Source of the DNA: Hyalangium minutum
GTDB lineage: Bacteria; Myxococcota; Myxococcia; Myxococcales; Myxococcaceae
Direction: 5' to 3'
Assembly (NCBI RefSeq): GCF_000737315.1
Contig: NZ_JMCB01000003.1
Coordinates: 1,116,001-1,180,000, forward strand
DNA length: 64,000 nt
Shown here one piece after another: positions 5,532 through 13,169 of this stretch. The position numbers were made by a program, and so were the translations under genes. The stretch's first letter is position 1. Every line of letters starts with the position of its first letter. A model generated the notes under the pieces. It was not told where the DNA came from and searched no databases. It saw nothing but the letters and a program-made list of their open reading frames with translations.

Positions 5532-8500
5532 ATGCTCTCCCTCGGCTCTCCCGCGACAGCCCCCACTGGAACGGTCGCCCTCGTCTTCACGGACATCGAG
5601 GGCTCCACCCAGTTGTGGGAGCGGTGCAGCACCTCGATGCGCGAGGCGCTCGAGCTGCACGACCGAGTCATGCGAGAGCGGCTCAGACGCACCTCGGGCT
5701 ACGAAGTGAAGACCCAGGGCGACTCGTTCATGCTCGCATTCCCCTCCGTGGACGAGGCCCTGCGGTGGTGCCTCGACGTGCAGGAGACGCTGCTACACGT
5801 GCCCTGGCCCGCGGAGCTGCTGGCCCAGCCCTTGGCCTTGGAGCGAATGGGGCCTCGCGGGCTGCTGCACCGCGGCCTCCGGGTACGCATGGGCGTGCAT
5901 GTAGGCGAGCCCGAGTGCCGGCCCGACCCCCGCACCGGCCAGATGGACTACTTCGGCCCGGTGGTGAACCTGACGGCCCGTGTGGCGGAGGCGGGCCACG
6001 GCGGACAGGTGTTGCTTAGCGGAGCAGCCCTGGCGCACGTGGCGGGCACCCTGGATGCGCTGGGGAGCCCCTCGGTGCGTCCGCTGGGCGAGTTTCGGCT
6101 CAAGGGCATCACCCTGCCCGTGCCCCTGGTGGAAGTGCTGCCCTCCTCGCTGGCCGACCGCCGCTTCGCGGGTCTGCGCGTCCCCGAGGAGCGGCGCGGC
6201 AATGTGCCCACCGCCGTGGACACACTCATCGGCCGGGAGCAGGAGCTCGCGTGCTTGCGGCGCTGGTTCGAAGAGGGTGTGCACCTCATCACCCTGCTGG
6301 GCCCGGGAGGCATGGGGAAGACCCGGCTCGCCACCCACTTTGGCGCTACCCAGCTCCAGGCGCGGCGGTGGGACGGAGGCGTGTGGTGGTGCGATCTCAC
6401 CGAGGCGCGCACGGAGGAGGACATCTGCCATGCCCTGGCTCGCGCGCTCGACGTCTCGCTCACGCGGGATGGGGACGCGAGCCGCCCGGCGGAGCGGCTG
6501 GGGCGCGCCCTGGCTGGCTGCGGTGCATCGCTGGTGCTGCTGGACAATGTGGAGCAGGTCATCCACCACATGCCGCACACGCTGGGCCGCTGGCTGTCGC
6601 TCGCGCCGCACACCCGGTTCCTCGTCACCTCCCGCCACGCTCTCCAGCTTCCCGGGGAGCAGCTGCTGGACCTCGCACCGCTGGAGCTGCCCGCGGAAGG
6701 CGAGGTCCGCCTGGAGGAGCTGGCCCGGTCCGAAGCCGTGCAGCTCTTCGCCCAGCGGGCTCGCGCGGTCCGCGGGAGCTTCGAGCTGACGGAGCAGGAG
6801 GCTCCCCTGGTGGCGGACATCGTGCGGCGGCTGGACGGCATCGCGCTGGCCATTGAGCTGGCGGCCGCGCGCACCAACCTCTTGAGCATCCAGCAGCTCC
6901 GCAACCGGCTGCCGCGCCGCTTCGAGTTGTTGAGCTGCGGCCTGCGCGAGGCCTCGCACCGGCAAGCGACGCTCCGGGGTGCCATCGACTGGTCCTGGAA
7001 CCTGCTGGAGGCCTCCGAGCAAGAAGCGCTGGCCCAGTGCTCCGTGTTCCGCGGCGGCTTCACGATGGAGGCGGCCGAAGCGGTGCTCGCGCTCCCCCCG
7101 TGGGGCGGGGACATCCTGGACACCCTGCAGTCGCTCCGGTCGAAGTCGCTGTTGAAGCTGTCGGCCTCGGAGAGCACCGACGGCGAGCTGCGCCTGGGCA
7201 TGTACGAGAGCATCCGTGAGTACGCCTGCGCCCGGCTGGCTGAGACAGGAGGGAACGCATCCATCGTGGCGCGGCACGCGGAGTACTACGTCACCCGGGC
7301 GCGCGGGCTGCGCGATCAGGTCCGCGGCGGAGGCGGGCTGGAGGCACTGCGAGCGCTGGCGCTGGAGCGAGAGAACCTGCTGGCCGCCTGTGACAGCTGC
7401 CTCATGATGGTGCCGGGCACGGCCGAGTCGCTCACACGGGCGCTCCTGGGCCTGGTGGCGCTCGAGCCCGACGTGGCGGCGCGAGGGCCCGCGGGCCTGC
7501 TGCTCCCACGACTGGAGCTGGCACTAGAGCTGGCCGAGTCCGTGCCCGTCGAGCCCATGCTGCGCACCGAGGCCCTGGCGGTCCGGGGACGCGCCCACCT
7601 GGAGGCTGGACAGCTCACCTTCGCGCGGAGAGATCTGGAGGCGGCACGTGACGCCTTCCACCTCCTGGGGGCGATGGCGTGGAAGAAGGAGGCCCTGGTC
7701 GATCTCTCCATCGTGGCCCGGCACGAGGGCGACATGGACGCGGCATGGAGCCTCATCCAGGAGGCCCAGACGATCCCATCGGGGACCCGGCGGTGGCTGG
7801 AGGCCTATGCGCTGGGGAACCTGGGACTCGTGGAGCAGAGCCGTCAAGGCGCAGAGGCGGCCATTCCCCACCTGCGCGCCGCGCTGGAGCTGTTCCGGGC
7901 CGTGGGAGACACGACGTTCGAGGCCATGTTCCTGGTCAACTGCGGCCTGGCCATTGGGGAGGCCGGGCGCACCGCCGAGGCCGTGCCCTACCTGGAGGAA
8001 GGCCTGGCCAAGTCCCTGAGCGCGGGCTACCGCATGGGCCACATCGTCGCGCGGATGGACCTGGGCTGCGTCCTGCTCGGGGAAGACCGTGCCGCGGAGG
8101 CCTGCGAGCACCTGGCCGCGGCCGAGCGGATGGGCCGGCAGCTCGGCATCCGCCTCCTGGAGGGAATGACACGGGGAGAGTTGGGACGGGCCTTGCTGGC
8201 CGTGGGCACCATGGAGCCTGCGCGGGCTCAGCTCAGCGCGGCCGTGGCGGTGCTGGAGCCCGTGTCGCGCTCTCACGCCCTTCGGTTCTCCGCGTACCAC
8301 GCGGCGGCTCATGCGCTGGCGGGGGCGCTGACAGTGGCGCGCCAGGACTTCAACGAGTTGGAGGCCGCCCCGGAGCTCCGAAATGAGCCGGCCTTGCGCG
8401 CCCTCACATCCTTGCTGCGCGCCACCGTCGAGGTAGCGGAACTCCGTGCCGCGCCCCCCGGCACCGAGGAGGCATGGCAGGCGGAGCAGGCGCTTCAGCA

Positions 8501-8600
8501 GCGGCTGGAGCGGGCGCGGACTGCTCCGGCGGCGGAGACCTCGTCCGACCTGCGCGGTGCCCTCCGGCTGTTGGAGCGCTGGCGGGAGGCCCAGGCGTAG
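5532..8600 (+). CDS. Class III adenylate cyclase - STAND (NB-ARC-like) ATPase - TPR protein
   Basis: FTDIEGST, EVKTQGDSF and MDYFGPVVNLTAR (ATP-specifying K/D, catalytic N/R). Walker A GPGGMGKT, Walker B LVLLDNVE, GIALAIELAAAR, then helical TPR repeats. Confidence 0.93.
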   Translation: MLSLGSPATAPTGTVALVFTDIEGSTQLWERCSTSMREALELHDRVMRERLRRTSGYEVKTQGDSFMLAFPSVDEALRWCLDVQETLLHVPWPAELLAQPLALERMGPRGLLHRGLRVRMGVHVGEPECRPDPRTGQMDYFGPVVNLTARVAEAGHGGQVLLSGAALAHVAGTLDALGSPSVRPLGEFRLKGITLPVPLVEVLPSSLADRRFAGLRVPEERRGNVPTAVDTLIGREQELACLRRWFEEGVHLITLLGPGGMGKTRLATHFGATQLQARRWDGGVWWCDLTEARTEEDICHALARALDVSLTRDGDASRPAERLGRALAGCGASLVLLDNVEQVIHHMPHTLGRWLSLAPHTRFLVTSRHALQLPGEQLLDLAPLELPAEGEVRLEELARSEAVQLFAQRARAVRGSFELTEQEAPLVADIVRRLDGIALAIELAAARTNLLSIQQLRNRLPRRFELLSCGLREASHRQATLRGAIDWSWNLLEASEQEALAQCSVFRGGFTMEAAEAVLALPPWGGDILDTLQSLRSKSLLKLSASESTDGELRLGMYESIREYACARLAETGGNASIVARHAEYYVTRARGLRDQVRGGGGLEALRALALERENLLAACDSCLMMVPGTAESLTRALLGLVALEPDVAARGPAGLLLPRLELALELAESVPVEPMLRTEALAVRGRAHLEAGQLTFARRDLEAARDAFHLLGAMAWKKEALVDLSIVARHEGDMDAAWSLIQEAQTIPSGTRRWLEAYALGNLGLVEQSRQGAEAAIPHLRAALELFRAVGDTTFEAMFLVNCGLAIGEAGRTAEAVPYLEEGLAKSLSAGYRMGHIVARMDLGCVLLGEDRAAEACEHLAAAERMGRQLGIRLLEGMTRGELGRALLAVGTMEPARAQLSAAVAVLEPVSRSHALRFSAYHAAAHALAGALTVARQDFNELEAAPELRNEPALRALTSLLRATVEVAELRAAPPGTEEAWQAEQALQQRLERARTAPAAETSSDLRGALRLLERWREAQA

Positions 8601-8618: not shown

Positions 8619-11108
8619 CTACTGGGTGGAGAGCACCTCGATGGCCCGGGCGACGAGCGTGTCGTGGTCGAAGGCCAGCGAGGGCCGCCGCTCGACGGAC
8701 ACGAAGAGCGCGGCCGCGGCATCCGAACCTCCGAGGACGAGACTTCCGGCGGTGTCATCCGGTGCCACCCCAGCGATGCGTGTGGCGAAGACGTGGCTGC
8801 GCACCCACCGCTCCTCGGTGTCGCGAGGGTCACGGCCCCCGCCCGCCACGACGCAGACAGGCACGAGCACAGATGCGGGCACCCTCACACCGGTCTCTTC
8901 GAGGAGCTCTCGGACGGCGGCGTCTCGGGGTGACTCACCGGGGCGGACGAAACCTCCGGGCAGGGACATGCGTCCCGCGGCGGCACCGCTGTCGTCATGG
9001 CGCCGGATGAGGAGCAGCTCGTCATCGCCCTGGGCACCGCGCCGGACCACGACGATATCTGCGGCGTCGTTGGGCCCTGGATGGCGGAGCTGGCCCCAGG
9101 GGCGCTGGTCATCGAGTGCCTCCAGAACCTCCGCGGCCCTATCGACGAAGCGGACGTGCTTGCTGGCTCGCGCGGCGTCCACGGCGGCGCCTCGCAGCCC
9201 GGACAGGTACACATGCCGGGCGCGGATGTTGTAGGCGGCCTGCTGCTCGTCCGCGACAATCAGTCCGCCTCCCAGAAAGAGCCCGAGACCCTGGGCGTCT
9301 CGCACCAGGCGCACCACGGGTGCGGCCTTCTCGTACAAGGATCGCGCGCAACGCCAGAACCGCTGGACACGCCCGTCGAGATCCTCCGCGAGCGTCTCTT
9401 CCACGATGGCGCCAAGCACCTCGACTCCCGCCTGCACGGCGAGACCGTGGCTCAGTCCTTCCATGCCGTGGCATGTCCCCCCGGTCAGGAGGATGCCCCC
9501 GCGCTTCGCGAGACCTCGGAGGACCTCGCCGAGGACAGTGGTGGCGTGCTGAATCTCTTCGGGAGACCATGCGGCGAACGCGTGACGCCAGGCTCCCGCG
9601 AGCCACAGTAATGGGCGGCCATTCACAGCAGGCGTCTCTTCAGTGACGGTGGCGCCGAGCTCGCACAATCGCTGGTCCTGGGCCGCTCGCACTGCTCCTC
9701 GCTGCGCGGCGATCTCCGCGGCACGGGCAGGCGTGAAGTGCCGCCGTGGCTCGGGCGGAGGGGAGCTCCAGTTTCTCAGTGGAGGCAGAGCACGCTCCCG
9801 CTCCTGCTTCACCGCCAGCAGCGCTTCTTCCGTGAGGCGGATCCGGGCGAGCCGGTCTTCATCGAGACCGCAGGCGATCGCAGCGCGGACCTCGTCGGCG
9901 GCCGAGGTGCCATAGAGCCCTGCCCCGTCACTGCCGAGGACCACTGCCACCCCCGCATCCACATAGCGGCGAAGCGGGACCTGGAGCGTGGTCTGGATGT
10001 TGTTCAGCGCGAGGTTGGAGGTGAGGTTGAACTCCACCACCAACCGATCCGCGTTGTGGGCCATGGCCGCCAGGGTGTCGTCATCGACGCCGTACAGGCC
10101 GTGGCCAATGCGGAGCTCGACGCCTGGAAAGGGTAACAACGCGCGTACGGCCTCACGGACGTTCTCGGGAAACGCAGGGTTCTCTCCTGCATGCACGCGA
10201 ACGACGAAGCCAGGCCGCGCTCTCCCGAGCGCCGCGGCACGCTCCAGCACCGGGAGGAAGGCCCGCGTGGAGCAGGTCTCGTGGCCCATGACGTCCACGC
10301 CCACGACGGCCCGGCTCGGCAGGCACTGCTCGAGGCGATCGAGCACATCGAGATCCCACTCGAGATCGTCATGCCGCGACAAGGCCGCGAGGAAGCGGAG
10401 GCGGACACCGCTGGACGCCTCCAACTCGTCGAGCGAGGCATGGAGCGCGGAGAGCACCTCGGGCTCCACCGCCGAGGAGAGCGAAAGCTCGGCATAAGCG
10501 ACGCCCGCAGCGGCAAGTTCCCGGCAGATGGCGTGCAGCTGCGGGACGAAGAGCCTGGGATGCTTGGTGAACGGACTTCGGCGCGCGTAGAGGCGCTCCA
10601 TGTCCCGGAACGTGATCTGCCGGTCGAGGGGAACATCGAGGCTGCGAGCGAGCCGCTCGCGCGCCGATCCATCGAGCAACGCCGCGGGGACATCCTGCCG
10701 GGCATCGATGCCAGCCTCCACCAGCACACTCCGAGGCACGTTGACGCCCTCCTCGGCCGCGGCCAGCTCGACCAGGACTCGTCCAGGAAGAGCGCCAGCG
10801 AAGTGCGTGTGGAGATCCGTGCGGGGAGAGAACAGTGGCGCGCCCGTGGGGAGCGTCATCGGCACATTGTTGTCGGCCAGGAAGCGCGCCTCGAAAGCCG
10901 TGAGCGCCTCCACATCCCCGGGAGAGCTGAACCGGGCGCGAACCTGGCCGCCGAAGACGAGCGTGTCACCGCCCTCCCCCACCACGAGGTGACGCTCCAG
11001 CGCGGCGCGGAGGCGGCTGCGATCGTCATCGGCCTCGACGCGAAGACGGCCCTCCTCCCACCGAACACGGTGGCCAGGAACCAGCGTCACGCCAGGGGAC
11101 ATCGCCAT
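8619..11108 (-). CDS. Multidomain fusion: adenosine-deaminase-like amidohydrolase + SLOG (LOG-like) + Nudix hydrolase
   Basis: DLHTHFAG, VGVDVMGHE, VHAGE, RIGHG, LTSN and GSDG metal/catalytic motifs. SLOG-like ILLTGG..GMEG..VLGAI and LFLGGGLIVADE. Perfect Nudix box GFVRPGESPRDAAVRELLEETGV plus RDPR and LAFDH. Confidence 0.85.
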   Translation of the reverse strand: MAMSPGVTLVPGHRVRWEEGRLRVEADDDRSRLRAALERHLVVGEGGDTLVFGGQVRARFSSPGDVEALTAFEARFLADNNVPMTLPTGAPLFSPRTDLHTHFAGALPGRVLVELAAAEEGVNVPRSVLVEAGIDARQDVPAALLDGSARERLARSLDVPLDRQITFRDMERLYARRSPFTKHPRLFVPQLHAICRELAAAGVAYAELSLSSAVEPEVLSALHASLDELEASSGVRLRFLAALSRHDDLEWDLDVLDRLEQCLPSRAVVGVDVMGHETCSTRAFLPVLERAAALGRARPGFVVRVHAGENPAFPENVREAVRALLPFPGVELRIGHGLYGVDDDTLAAMAHNADRLVVEFNLTSNLALNNIQTTLQVPLRRYVDAGVAVVLGSDGAGLYGTSAADEVRAAIACGLDEDRLARIRLTEEALLAVKQERERALPPLRNWSSPPPEPRRHFTPARAAEIAAQRGAVRAAQDQRLCELGATVTEETPAVNGRPLLWLAGAWRHAFAAWSPEEIQHATTVLGEVLRGLAKRGGILLTGGTCHGMEGLSHGLAVQAGVEVLGAIVEETLAEDLDGRVQRFWRCARSLYEKAAPVVRLVRDAQGLGLFLGGGLIVADEQQAAYNIRARHVYLSGLRGAAVDAARASKHVRFVDRAAEVLEALDDQRPWGQLRHPGPNDAADIVVVRRGAQGDDELLLIRRHDDSGAAAGRMSLPGGFVRPGESPRDAAVRELLEETGVRVPASVLVPVCVVAGGGRDPRDTEERWVRSHVFATRIAGVAPDDTAGSLVLGGSDAAAALFVSVERRPSLAFDHDTLVARAIEVLSTQ

Positions 11109-12539: not shown

Positions 12540-13064
12540 TCAGATGGCGTCGAGATCGATGTCGCAGCCAATCTGCTCGGCCAGTGCCGCCAACTCCTCA
12601 CGCATCTTGCGGGCGCTCGTGCCCTGAGGAAGGGTGACGACCCCCTCGAGCACGAAGAGCGGCGTCCCCGCGAAGGGCGCCGACTCAATCCGCGTCTCCA
12701 GCTCCTCGACATTGACGGAGTGCTGACGGAGGAGCGCGGTCACGCGGGCGACGATGCCGGGCTGATCGTTGCTGTAGACCTTGAGCCGGTAAGGGATGCT
12801 GCCGGGGGCGCGGGAGCCAGCGGCGGACGCCTCATACATCTCGAGGTGCAGCCCCAGCCCGGTGCCTTCGTTCTCGAGCTTGCGCCGGAGCGAGTCGAGC
12901 GCTTCGGCGGGGCCCACGATGAGGGCCAGCAGGGCGAAGTGGCCGCGCAGATTGACCATGCGGCTGTCGGCGAGGCTGGCGCCGACGTCATAAACGTGAC
13001 GGGTGAGCTCGGCGACGAGCCCAGGGCGATCGGGACCGACGGCGGTGACGATGAGCTGTGGCAT
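12540..13064 (-). CDS. Tandem ACT-domain protein (GcvR-like)
   Basis: LIVTAVGPDRPGLV and LKVYSNDQPGIV ACT motifs, with SAPFAGTPLF in the second domain. Confidence 0.9.
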   Translation of the reverse strand: MPQLIVTAVGPDRPGLVAELTRHVYDVGASLADSRMVNLRGHFALLALIVGPAEALDSLRRKLENEGTGLGLHLEMYEASAAGSRAPGSIPYRLKVYSNDQPGIVARVTALLRQHSVNVEELETRIESAPFAGTPLFVLEGVVTLPQGTSARKMREELAALAEQIGCDIDLDAI

Positions 13065-13169
13065 CGCCGGGACCATAACAACTTTCCGGGGAGGCCAGAG
13101 GCCGTCTAGTGGTGAGGTGACTTTGTCGCTGGCGCCGCAGGCGAACCACCACCGTGGCACGATAGGTCC

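Follow-up and report, generated by a model that had tools for sequence, protein, structure and literature searches.

Sensor-fused deaminases of the adenosine deaminase (ADA) fold, as found in Cad1 and RADAR, have been recognized only recently, and they shut cells down by converting ATP to ITP. RdrB, of RADAR, is an ADA-fold antiphage effector that acts on ATP and dATP. Cad1 (CAAD), the CARF-adenosine deaminase of type III CRISPR, deaminates ATP and is without adenosine deaminase activity (PMC12669630), and its sensor can degrade its own ligand by ring-nuclease activity (PMC12669630, PMC11645235). Sensing through a SLOG domain is known from ThsA of Thoeris, which is described as responding to a cyclic ADP-ribose (ADPR) isomer (PMC11204291). 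In the channel TRPM2, the MHR1/2 (SLOG) site and the Nudix domain NUDT9-H both bind ADPR according to two studies (PMC7201883, PMC11479946), and ancestral NUDT9-H hydrolyzes ADPR slowly (the same studies; PMC6461439). Here we describe a gene that unites these domain types in one polypeptide. It lies at positions 8619 to 11108 of a 64,000-nucleotide stretch of the Hyalangium minutum genome (contig NZ_JMCB01000003.1), here called the window, and it encodes an 829-residue protein with an ADA-fold deaminase domain, a SLOG domain, and a Nudix domain.

The ADA-SLOG-Nudix family to which this protein belongs is widespread, well supported, and uncharacterized. From the residues conserved in it and from the relatives of its domains, we tentatively propose that the protein is a self-contained, ligand-controlled nucleotide deaminase, a reading that we rate as nearly, but not quite, as likely to be right as wrong. 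Searches of the PDB and of the literature yielded no structure and no paper for the architecture, in agreement with a preliminary description made from the DNA letters, whose author knew of no characterized protein of this kind; a comparative survey of SLOG domains may list it.

The window gene encodes a conserved three-domain protein

The gene is on the minus strand of the window, which has a GC content of ~68%. An AlphaFold2 model of the full-length protein is very confident (predicted local distance difference test [pLDDT], 94; predicted template modeling score [pTM], 0.93), which suggests that the domains are fixed relative to one another. The gene, the parts of its product, and the evidence for each are as follows.

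8619..11108, minus strand: whole gene for the 829-residue ADA-SLOG-Nudix protein, with ATG start and the stop codon (8619-8621) included (open reading frame [ORF] list and translation)
10836..11108, minus strand: N-terminal domain, residues 1-91, mainly beta strands, with the terminal conserved helix LTAFEARFLADN, in which R75 is invariant (secondary structure of the model)
9744..10835, minus strand: ADA-fold amidohydrolase deaminase domain, residues 92-455 (Pfam, NCBIfam, Foldseek, residue alignment, and invariance in the family)
9627..9743, minus strand: long helical linker, residues 456-494 (model helix at 460-483; low sequence conservation)
9105..9626, minus strand: SLOG domain, residues 495-668, nearest family LSDAT_prok, TRPM-type (Pfam scans of homologues, SLOG-only model, alignment)
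8622..9104, minus strand: Nudix domain, residues 669-829 (Pfam, NCBIfam, and PDB profile matches)

The motifs of the three domains are at the following residues.

Residues 98-104: DLHTHFA, ADA domain
Residues 305-310: VHAGEN, ADA domain
Residues 333-337: RIGHG, ADA domain
Residues 363-365: TSN, ADA domain
Residues 392-395: GSDG, ADA domain
Residues 542-551: TGGTCHGMEG, SLOG domain
Residues 613-621: GGGLIVADE, SLOG domain
Residues 719-741 (window 8886-8954, minus strand): Nudix box GFVRPGESPRDAAVRELLEETGV, an exact GX5EX7REUXEEXGU
Residues 759-762: RDPR, Nudix domain
Residues 811-815: LAFDH, Nudix domain

Every motif that the preliminary description had named for the 829-residue ORF was present at its expected place, and its assignments of ADA, SLOG, and Nudix domains all hold.

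In a sequence search, 262 proteins scored E <= 0.001; of the 120 listed among them, 118 are full length. The full-length architecture is found in at least 118 clusters, at 39 to 95% identity to the window protein. Its closest relatives are from Hyalangium and Stigmatella, and homologues occur across Myxococcota, Rhodoferax/Burkholderiales, Alphaproteobacteria, Planctomycetota, Acidobacteria, and metagenome-assembled genomes (MAGs) of Actinomycetota. Because 118 independent full-length homologues exist, a gene-fusion artifact was rejected. We aligned these 118 homologues with the window protein, and all residue counts below refer to the resulting 119 full-length sequences, in which all three domains keep their catalytic and ligand residues without change or nearly so. 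For the N-terminal domain (residues 1-91), a family assignment was sought and none was obtained. A local hidden Markov model (HMM) of this domain matches all complete homologues of the Nudix-bearing clade, and its terminal helix motif is also kept in the Nudix-less sister clade described below.

The deaminase domain has a complete catalytic residue set and altered substrate contacts

Residues 194-424 match Pfam A_deaminase (PF00962; E = 8.8e-26; 91.2 bits versus a cut-off of 27), and the NCBIfam ADA match spans approximately residues 95-452. In Foldseek, the domain matched 6n9m, 1add, 8qch, and 3rys with probability 1.0 and target-normalized TM-scores of 0.7 to 0.8. Its structural neighbors are those of a generic ADA-family domain: Salmonella ADA (6n9m), human ADAL (8qch), adenine deaminase (3rys), and Cad1 (9c77). 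A residue-level alignment to mouse and Salmonella ADA mapped the active site.

Metal ligands: H15, H17, H214, and D295 in mouse ADA; H100, H102, H306, and D394 in the window protein
Catalytic residues: E217 and H238 in mouse ADA; E309 and H336 in the window protein

All six residues are invariant (119/119), and by this residue set the domain spanning residues 92-455 is a catalytically complete ADA-fold deaminase.

The substrate contacts are altered. D19 and D296 (mouse numbering) are the substrate-binding aspartates of ADA, the latter positioning purine N7 (PMC12669630). The D19 position is A104 in the window protein and Ala in 116/119 sequences, and the D296 position is G395, which is Gly in 119/119. 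In TaqCad1, G264 and N549 occupy these positions and contact ATP (PMC12669630). The GSDG motif had earlier been taken as a hint of a non-adenosine substrate, and the precedent of Cad1, with the same two ADA positions substituted, lends that hint support. Together with A104 and G395, the substitution of the same positions in Cad1 points to a 5'-phosphorylated nucleotide as the putative substrate rather than adenosine. A canonical adenosine deaminase (Add) was rejected, with both aspartates replaced and the NCBIfam Add equivalogs (TIGR01430, PRK09358) not reached (84.9 bits versus a cut-off of 216.55).

The central domain adopts a SLOG fold nearest to the TRPM-type family

Scanned against Pfam, the SLOG region of the window protein itself gives no match. 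When SLOG segments of the homologues were scanned singly, 18/20 matched LSDAT_prok (E <= 1; best, 3.6e-6), 8/20 matched YAcAr, and 6/20 matched LDcluster4, all of them SLOG families. LSDAT_prok (PF18171, "SLOG in TRPM, prokaryote") is the nearest family, its matches to the segments being below the gathering score of 25.4 bits, and some full-length homologues bear precomputed LSDAT_prok (PF18171) or YAcAr (PF10686) annotation. A model of the region alone (residues 490-672) is confident (pLDDT, 96; pTM, 0.92). Compared with the PDB by Foldseek, it matched the Moco-carrier protein, TM1055, LOG enzymes (several of them AMP-bound), and MHR1/2 of TRPM2/4/5/8, with probability 1.0 and TM-scores of ~0.6 to 0.7. 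Modeling had been named in advance as the check for a SLOG/Rossmannoid fold in this middle region, and the matches obtained are of the SLOG type.

The SLOG invariants of the family are W507, G543, G544, G548, E550, K594, G614, G615, D620, E621, and N627, and both glycine loops, TGGTxxGxE and GGG, are invariant. The last Glu of the LOG motif PGGXGTXXE (Glu122 in CgLOG) is a proposed catalytic residue of those enzymes (PMC4979012). When G614-E621 is aligned by hand with this motif, D620-E621 falls at the position of the adenine-binding/catalytic Glu pair. GGGLIVADE retains the Gly pair and, at its end, the Glu (E621), and the position of the catalytic Arg corresponds at best to K594. Neither the window protein nor the homologous segments matched the Pfam LOG family, Lysine_decarbox.

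By homology, the Nudix domain is of the ADPR type, and its box has decayed in several lineages

Pfam NUDIX (PF00293) matches residues 682-776 (E = 4e-16; 59.7 bits versus a cut-off of 21.1). The best NCBIfam matches are NadM-Nudix, NtrR, and NudE, with all equivalog cut-offs missed. Profile matches in the PDB comprise the NrtR-like proteins 3i9x (1.8e-20) and 2fml, Shewanella NrtR (3gz5/3gz8, with ADPR), NUDT9-H of Nematostella TRPM2 (6co7; 8e-12), choanoflagellate TRPM2 (8sr7), NadM-Nudix (2qjo), and NUDT9 (1q33; 1e-9). These PDB relatives are all ADPR binders or hydrolases, and by homology the domain is of the ADPR type (NrtR/NadM/NUDT9). The preliminary description had typed it in the same way, and the NCBIfam matches and the closest PDB relatives, the latter ADPR binders or hydrolases, bear this out.

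The Nudix-box glutamates are lost in 10/119 members, with boxes reading RVLARE, RVLDRE, RVLRRE, RVLAQE, RVVAAE, RVLAAE, RVVAGK, and RKLEEE. The first glutamate of the box coordinates the catalytic Mg2+; NUDT9 with the sequence RILGEE is inactive, and human TRPM2 NUDT9-H (RILRQE) binds ADPR without hydrolyzing it (PMC6461439). The change in the dead-box members is E to I/V, as in human TRPM2 NUDT9-H. These members keep RDPR, FDH, and all ADA and SLOG invariants, are 56 to 83% identical to one another, and are spread over three or more separate lineages, in each of which intact-box relatives occur. Since the domain is retained where its box is dead, binding, and not hydrolysis, appears to be under constant selection. 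If Nudix catalysis were obligatory, the conservation of a dead domain would be difficult to explain; a ligand-binding module would fit.

A sister clade combines the ADA-SLOG unit with other third modules

A scan of one genome per species uncovered a sister clade in which ADA and SLOG domains occur without a Nudix domain (loci L043-L086, e.g., L047:9220-9756, L058:9198-9842, L070:304-3324, L078:9851-12940, and L053:3643-4083). Its hosts are gut and other host-associated bacteria, including host-associated Saccharibacteria, Clostridia, Alphaproteobacteria, Gastranaerophilales, and Chlamydiales. The two clades are alike in the ADA signature (DLHTHFAG, [ST]DG) and in the first SLOG motif (TGGTxxGVE); in the sister clade, the E621 position holds M/I/Y/L, and K594 is lost. 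The place of the Nudix domain as third module is often taken by a PGDYG-like domain (PF14083), encoded by an adjacent gene or fused N-terminally (L043) or C-terminally (L066, L070, and L071), or by a nucleoside-2-deoxyribosyltransferase-like domain (Nuc_deoxyri_tr2), fused in L078 and adjacent in L053, L062, and L069. A literature search on PGDYG found no paper. ADA plus SLOG is the constant unit, and the third module is interchangeable and always nucleotide-binding or -processing. On three MAG contigs (L044, L064, and L082), the homologue is split over two overlapping frames, either as a pseudogene or through an assembly or frameshift error.

A profile made from the SLOG segments retrieved 307 representatives at the 50% clustering level. 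We listed 142 new representatives and used local HMMs to type them; roughly one-half proved to be ADA-SLOG proteins, and the others have different partners. In some of the latter, the SLOG domain comes after a Zeta-toxin-type P-loop kinase, in certain cases as a tandem pair or triplet; in others, it is combined with HEAT repeats and an NMNAT-like nucleotidyltransferase (cytidylyltransferase domain). Joined to a kinase, to a nucleotidyltransferase, and in tandem repeats, this SLOG type behaves as a portable sensor would.

Two further observations concern these SLOG proteins. In several of the proteins with kinase or NMNAT-like partners (P0137, P0161, P0187, P0259, and P0218), the SLOG domain is preceded by a conserved unassigned domain with the motif ...QFKGQ[KR]RV...FW[VI]..[RQ].[SD]DP...GFETIL. 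A protein of 4275 residues (P0147) carries an ADA-SLOG-PGDYG module at its end (residues 2663-3422); it has a signal-peptide-like start and 2660 residues without a Pfam match, a layout reminiscent of polymorphic toxins with C-terminal toxin domains.

Genomic context differs between lineages

The window gene has its own upstream region of 95 bp and the following neighbors.

5532-8600, plus strand: 1022-residue protein that has an adenylate/guanylate cyclase domain at its N terminus, a STAND-type NTPase (NB-ARC/AAA), and TPR repeats; convergent, with 18 bp between the stop codons
11203-12516, minus strand: Kelch-repeat beta-propeller protein of 437 residues, directly upstream on the same strand
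12540-13160, minus strand: double-ACT protein of 206 residues, upstream of the Kelch gene

The Kelch, ACT, and cyclase-STAND neighbors are absent beside the 80 to 83% identical homologues of Hyalangium and Stigmatella. A promoter and terminator scan around the gene gave nothing informative. All-against-all clustering of ORFs from 80 loci revealed clade-specific synteny and no conserved partner beyond close relatives, and tightly coupled neighbor ORFs had no matches in the PDB.

For the Nudix clade, we took a census of 131 neighbors at ~35 loci with Pfam and PADLOC. The only recurring Pfam families were NAPRTase and NAD synthase, all in the Rhodoferax clade. At these loci (L010:5714-9789; L012-L016), the homologue is divergent from genes for NAPRTase (pncB), a glutamine-dependent NAD synthase (nadE), and a 345-residue NadM-Nudix-like protein, the C-terminal Nudix domain of which is matched by a local Nudix HMM. 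In a Planctomycetota MAG, a gene for a 461-residue fusion of an NMNAT-like domain and NAD kinase (L003:12673-14058, plus strand) overlaps the end of the homologue, at its stop codon, by 4 bp; genes for a histidine phosphatase and a CN-hydrolase lie upstream. At another locus, a 150-residue cytidine/dCMP-deaminase-like gene (dCMP_cyt_deam_1/MafB19-deam; L088:5549-6001, plus strand) runs right up to the homologue, ending exactly at its start codon, an apparent case of two deaminases in one operon.

Among the same 131 neighbors, PADLOC detected little apart from Septu (PtuA/PtuB) in one lineage, and one or two of the ~35 loci adjoin a defense system. The Septu-like pair, a PtuA-type AAA_21 ATPase and a PtuB-like protein of ~256 residues, lies on opposite sides of the gene at its two loci (L005:7861-9970 and L090:9801-11801), and the Septu-adjacent homologues (P0054 and P0064) have a degenerate Nudix box. 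Enrichment of the Nudix clade in defense islands was rejected on this result. Searches for full-length relatives in phage and plasmid collections (tblastn), in viral contigs (two scans), and by fold in BFVD gave single-domain matches only; phage-encoded NadM-family NMNAT/Nudix genes were among the matches of the Nudix domain. The preliminary description had cast the protein as a candidate conflict effector and had proposed scoring gene neighborhoods against defense islands. For the Nudix clade, that role is not supported: one or two loci lie beside Septu, no neighbor is conserved, no phage, plasmid, or viral-contig copy was found, and two lineages adjoin NAD-salvage genes instead. The evidence for defense in this clade is weak, and the context leaves its role as either defense or homeostasis.

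The neighbors of the sister clade include five resolvases, ISL3-type helix-turn-helix proteins, Fic, GH25 lysozymes, Cas9/Cas1, and methyltransferases, as well as two genes for separate Nudix domains and one for an ADP-ribosylglycohydrolase domain. A mobile or defense-like context is shown only by this Nudix-less clade, and the independent count is small because many of its loci are mutually related.

A proposed ligand-gated deaminase and alternative explanations

In the reading that we favor, the SLOG and Nudix domains would bind ADPR or a close NAD-derived nucleotide, most simply ADPR, and ligand occupancy would allosterically switch the deaminase, which would target a 5'-phosphorylated adenine nucleotide (ATP/dATP, ADP, or AMP) and not adenosine. 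With an intact Nudix box, as in the window protein, the Nudix domain would slowly hydrolyze the ligand and so make the response self-limiting. This sensor-plus-timer logic would be the same as that of the TRPM2 channel-enzymes. The setting is less certain: NAD+ breakdown, during stress or NADase-type immunity, may be coupled in this way to the adenylate pool, with the protein serving either as a growth-arrest or defense effector or in homeostasis, by linking purine nucleotides to NAD turnover. A sensor-effector is the best-supported explanation because of the interchangeable third module, the dead Nudix boxes, the loss of LOG residues in the sister clade, the re-use of the SLOG domain, and the behavior of TRPM2.

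Some points weigh against a ligand-gated deaminase. The Nudix clade keeps each of the three catalytic sets intact, the LOG-like D620-E621 and K594 among them, which leaves room for a three-step pathway. The identity of the ligand is drawn solely from the relatives of the domains. In sequence, the ADA domain shows no specific likeness to Cad1 (3.3e-11 against ADA 6n9m; 7.4e-6 against Cad1), and the substitutions that it shares with Cad1 may have arisen convergently and do not necessarily point to ATP. No trigger-producing TIR or SIR2 partner was seen among the 131 Nudix-clade neighbors. A more specific version of the proposal is possible but doubtful: the protein would be a soluble prokaryotic counterpart of TRPM2 sensing, with SLOG and Nudix reading ADPR and gating an ATP- or AMP-directed deaminase, a one-protein switch from NAD damage to adenylate depletion. 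If true, it would be a candidate stand-alone abortive-infection or stress effector, and it would document the ancestral module pairing from which the ligand sensing of a eukaryotic ADPR-gated channel arose.

The preliminary description had offered two mechanisms, a one-polypeptide pipeline and a deaminase switched by a SLOG-bound signal and reset by its own Nudix domain; the second is the better supported of the two, by the dead boxes, the sister clade, and the re-use of SLOG. As a pipeline, which we consider unlikely, the protein would recycle the products of NAD+ consumption: Nudix would cleave ADPR to AMP and ribose-5-phosphate, SLOG would split AMP into adenine and ribose-5-phosphate or bind AMP, and ADA would produce IMP from AMP or hypoxanthine from adenine. 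The three motif sets are indeed intact in the window protein and in ~92% of the clade, AMP-bound LOG structures are among the top SLOG fold matches, and D620-E621 can be hand-aligned with the LOG Glu pair (PMC4979012); however, the sister clade keeps ADA-SLOG without Nudix and without the LOG catalytic Glu and Lys, and the dead-box lineages still retain the Nudix domain. Loss of the ADA D19 residue would suit a 5'-phosphate substrate such as AMP, the Nudix product, whereas G395 removes the Asp that positions purine N7 in ADA enzymes. The gene is chromosomal and without a defense-island signal, and NAD-salvage genes adjoin it in two unrelated lineages (Rhodoferax-type pncB-nadE and the Planctomycetota NMNAT-like/NAD kinase fusion), but this adjacency is clade-specific and not general. 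A true pipeline would be a new route from ADPR turnover to purine salvage.

Two other explanations are less probable still. All three domains might attack a single ADPR-derived messenger, such as a cyclic ADPR isomer, and thereby switch off signaling or immunity. This would accord with SLOG and Nudix being known binders or processors of ADPR-type molecules, with a third module (Nudix, nucleoside-2-deoxyribosyltransferase-like, or PGDYG) that varies as different signal chemistries might demand, and with the ADP-ribosylglycohydrolase-domain and Nudix-domain genes beside sister-clade loci. We nevertheless judge it improbable: no conserved signal-producing enzyme is nearby, the phage and viral collections, in which anti-signal enzymes would be expected, yielded no member of the family, and the dead-Nudix members speak against degradation as the core role. 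Least credible is a housekeeping Add that merely bears extra domains. Adenosine deaminases are the best Pfam, NCBIfam, and PDB matches of residues 92-455, but the score is far under every NCBIfam Add equivalog cut-off, both adenosine-contacting aspartates are replaced family-wide, at the two positions also substituted in Cad1 with its lack of adenosine deaminase activity, and the phyletic distribution is patchy.

Comparison with known systems

Like Cad1, the window protein fuses an ADA-fold deaminase to a Rossmann-like nucleotide sensor and has D19/D296 replaced (G264/N549 in Cad1; A104/G395 here), and the ring-nuclease sensor of Cad1 is analogous to the Nudix reset proposed above. In contrast to Cad1, it has no CARF domain, the PADLOC CARF_ADA match covering the ADA part only (profile positions 259-556 of 605). 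Its sensors are SLOG and Nudix, the order is reversed with the deaminase N-terminal, and the ADA sequence is nearer to housekeeping ADA. No CARF or Cas genes were found in the window or among the 131 homologue neighbors, and we do not assign the protein to Cad1.

RADAR and Thoeris are more distant. The window protein matched neither RdrB nor ThsA in PADLOC, and no RdrA ATPase or ThsB TIR partner was found among the window neighbors or the 131 homologue neighbors. Membership in RADAR, Thoeris, TRPM2, and Cad1 was rejected, given the missing model matches and partners, channel, and CARF domain, respectively. With LOG/PpnN, the protein shares the SLOG fold, the two glycine-rich motifs, and D620-E621 at the Glu-pair position; it differs in having no Pfam LOG match, Lys (K594) at best for the catalytic Arg, and a Glu that is not kept in the sister clade.

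For residues 669-829, no group matches better in sequence and structure than the NrtR and NadM-Nudix proteins. NrtR genes adjoin genes of the pncB/nadE/nadM type, as do some Nudix-clade loci. The window protein, unlike these regulators and enzymes, has neither a winged-helix DNA-binding domain nor an NMNAT domain and scores far under the equivalog cut-offs.

TRPM2 likewise combines a TRPM-type SLOG domain (LSDAT) and an ADPR-type Nudix domain in one polypeptide, and TRPM structures were matched directly by the SLOG domain (6pur, 8sri, and 6pkx) and by the Nudix domain (6co7 and 8sr7). Both families include canonical and decayed Nudix boxes with the same E-to-I/V change. The output of the window protein would differ, being a soluble deaminase and no ion channel; its 829 residues are fully covered by soluble domains. 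SLOG and Nudix are adjacent in the window protein, where ligand binding is predicted, and at opposite ends in TRPM2, and the Nudix domain is nearer to bacterial NrtR/COG1051 (1.8e-20) than to NUDT9 (1e-9). The occurrence side by side in bacteria of the two ADPR-binding domain types of TRPM2 bears on the origin of ADPR gating and offers a soluble model for cooperation between the SLOG site and the Nudix site. The large, many-phylum family would add a different sensor logic to the sensor-fused ADA-fold deaminases, in which SLOG and Nudix, probably reading an NAD-derived nucleotide, act from a single gene with no partner. By analogy, its function would be most like that of Cad1, as a sensor-gated ADA-fold deaminase, and its sensing logic most like that of TRPM2.

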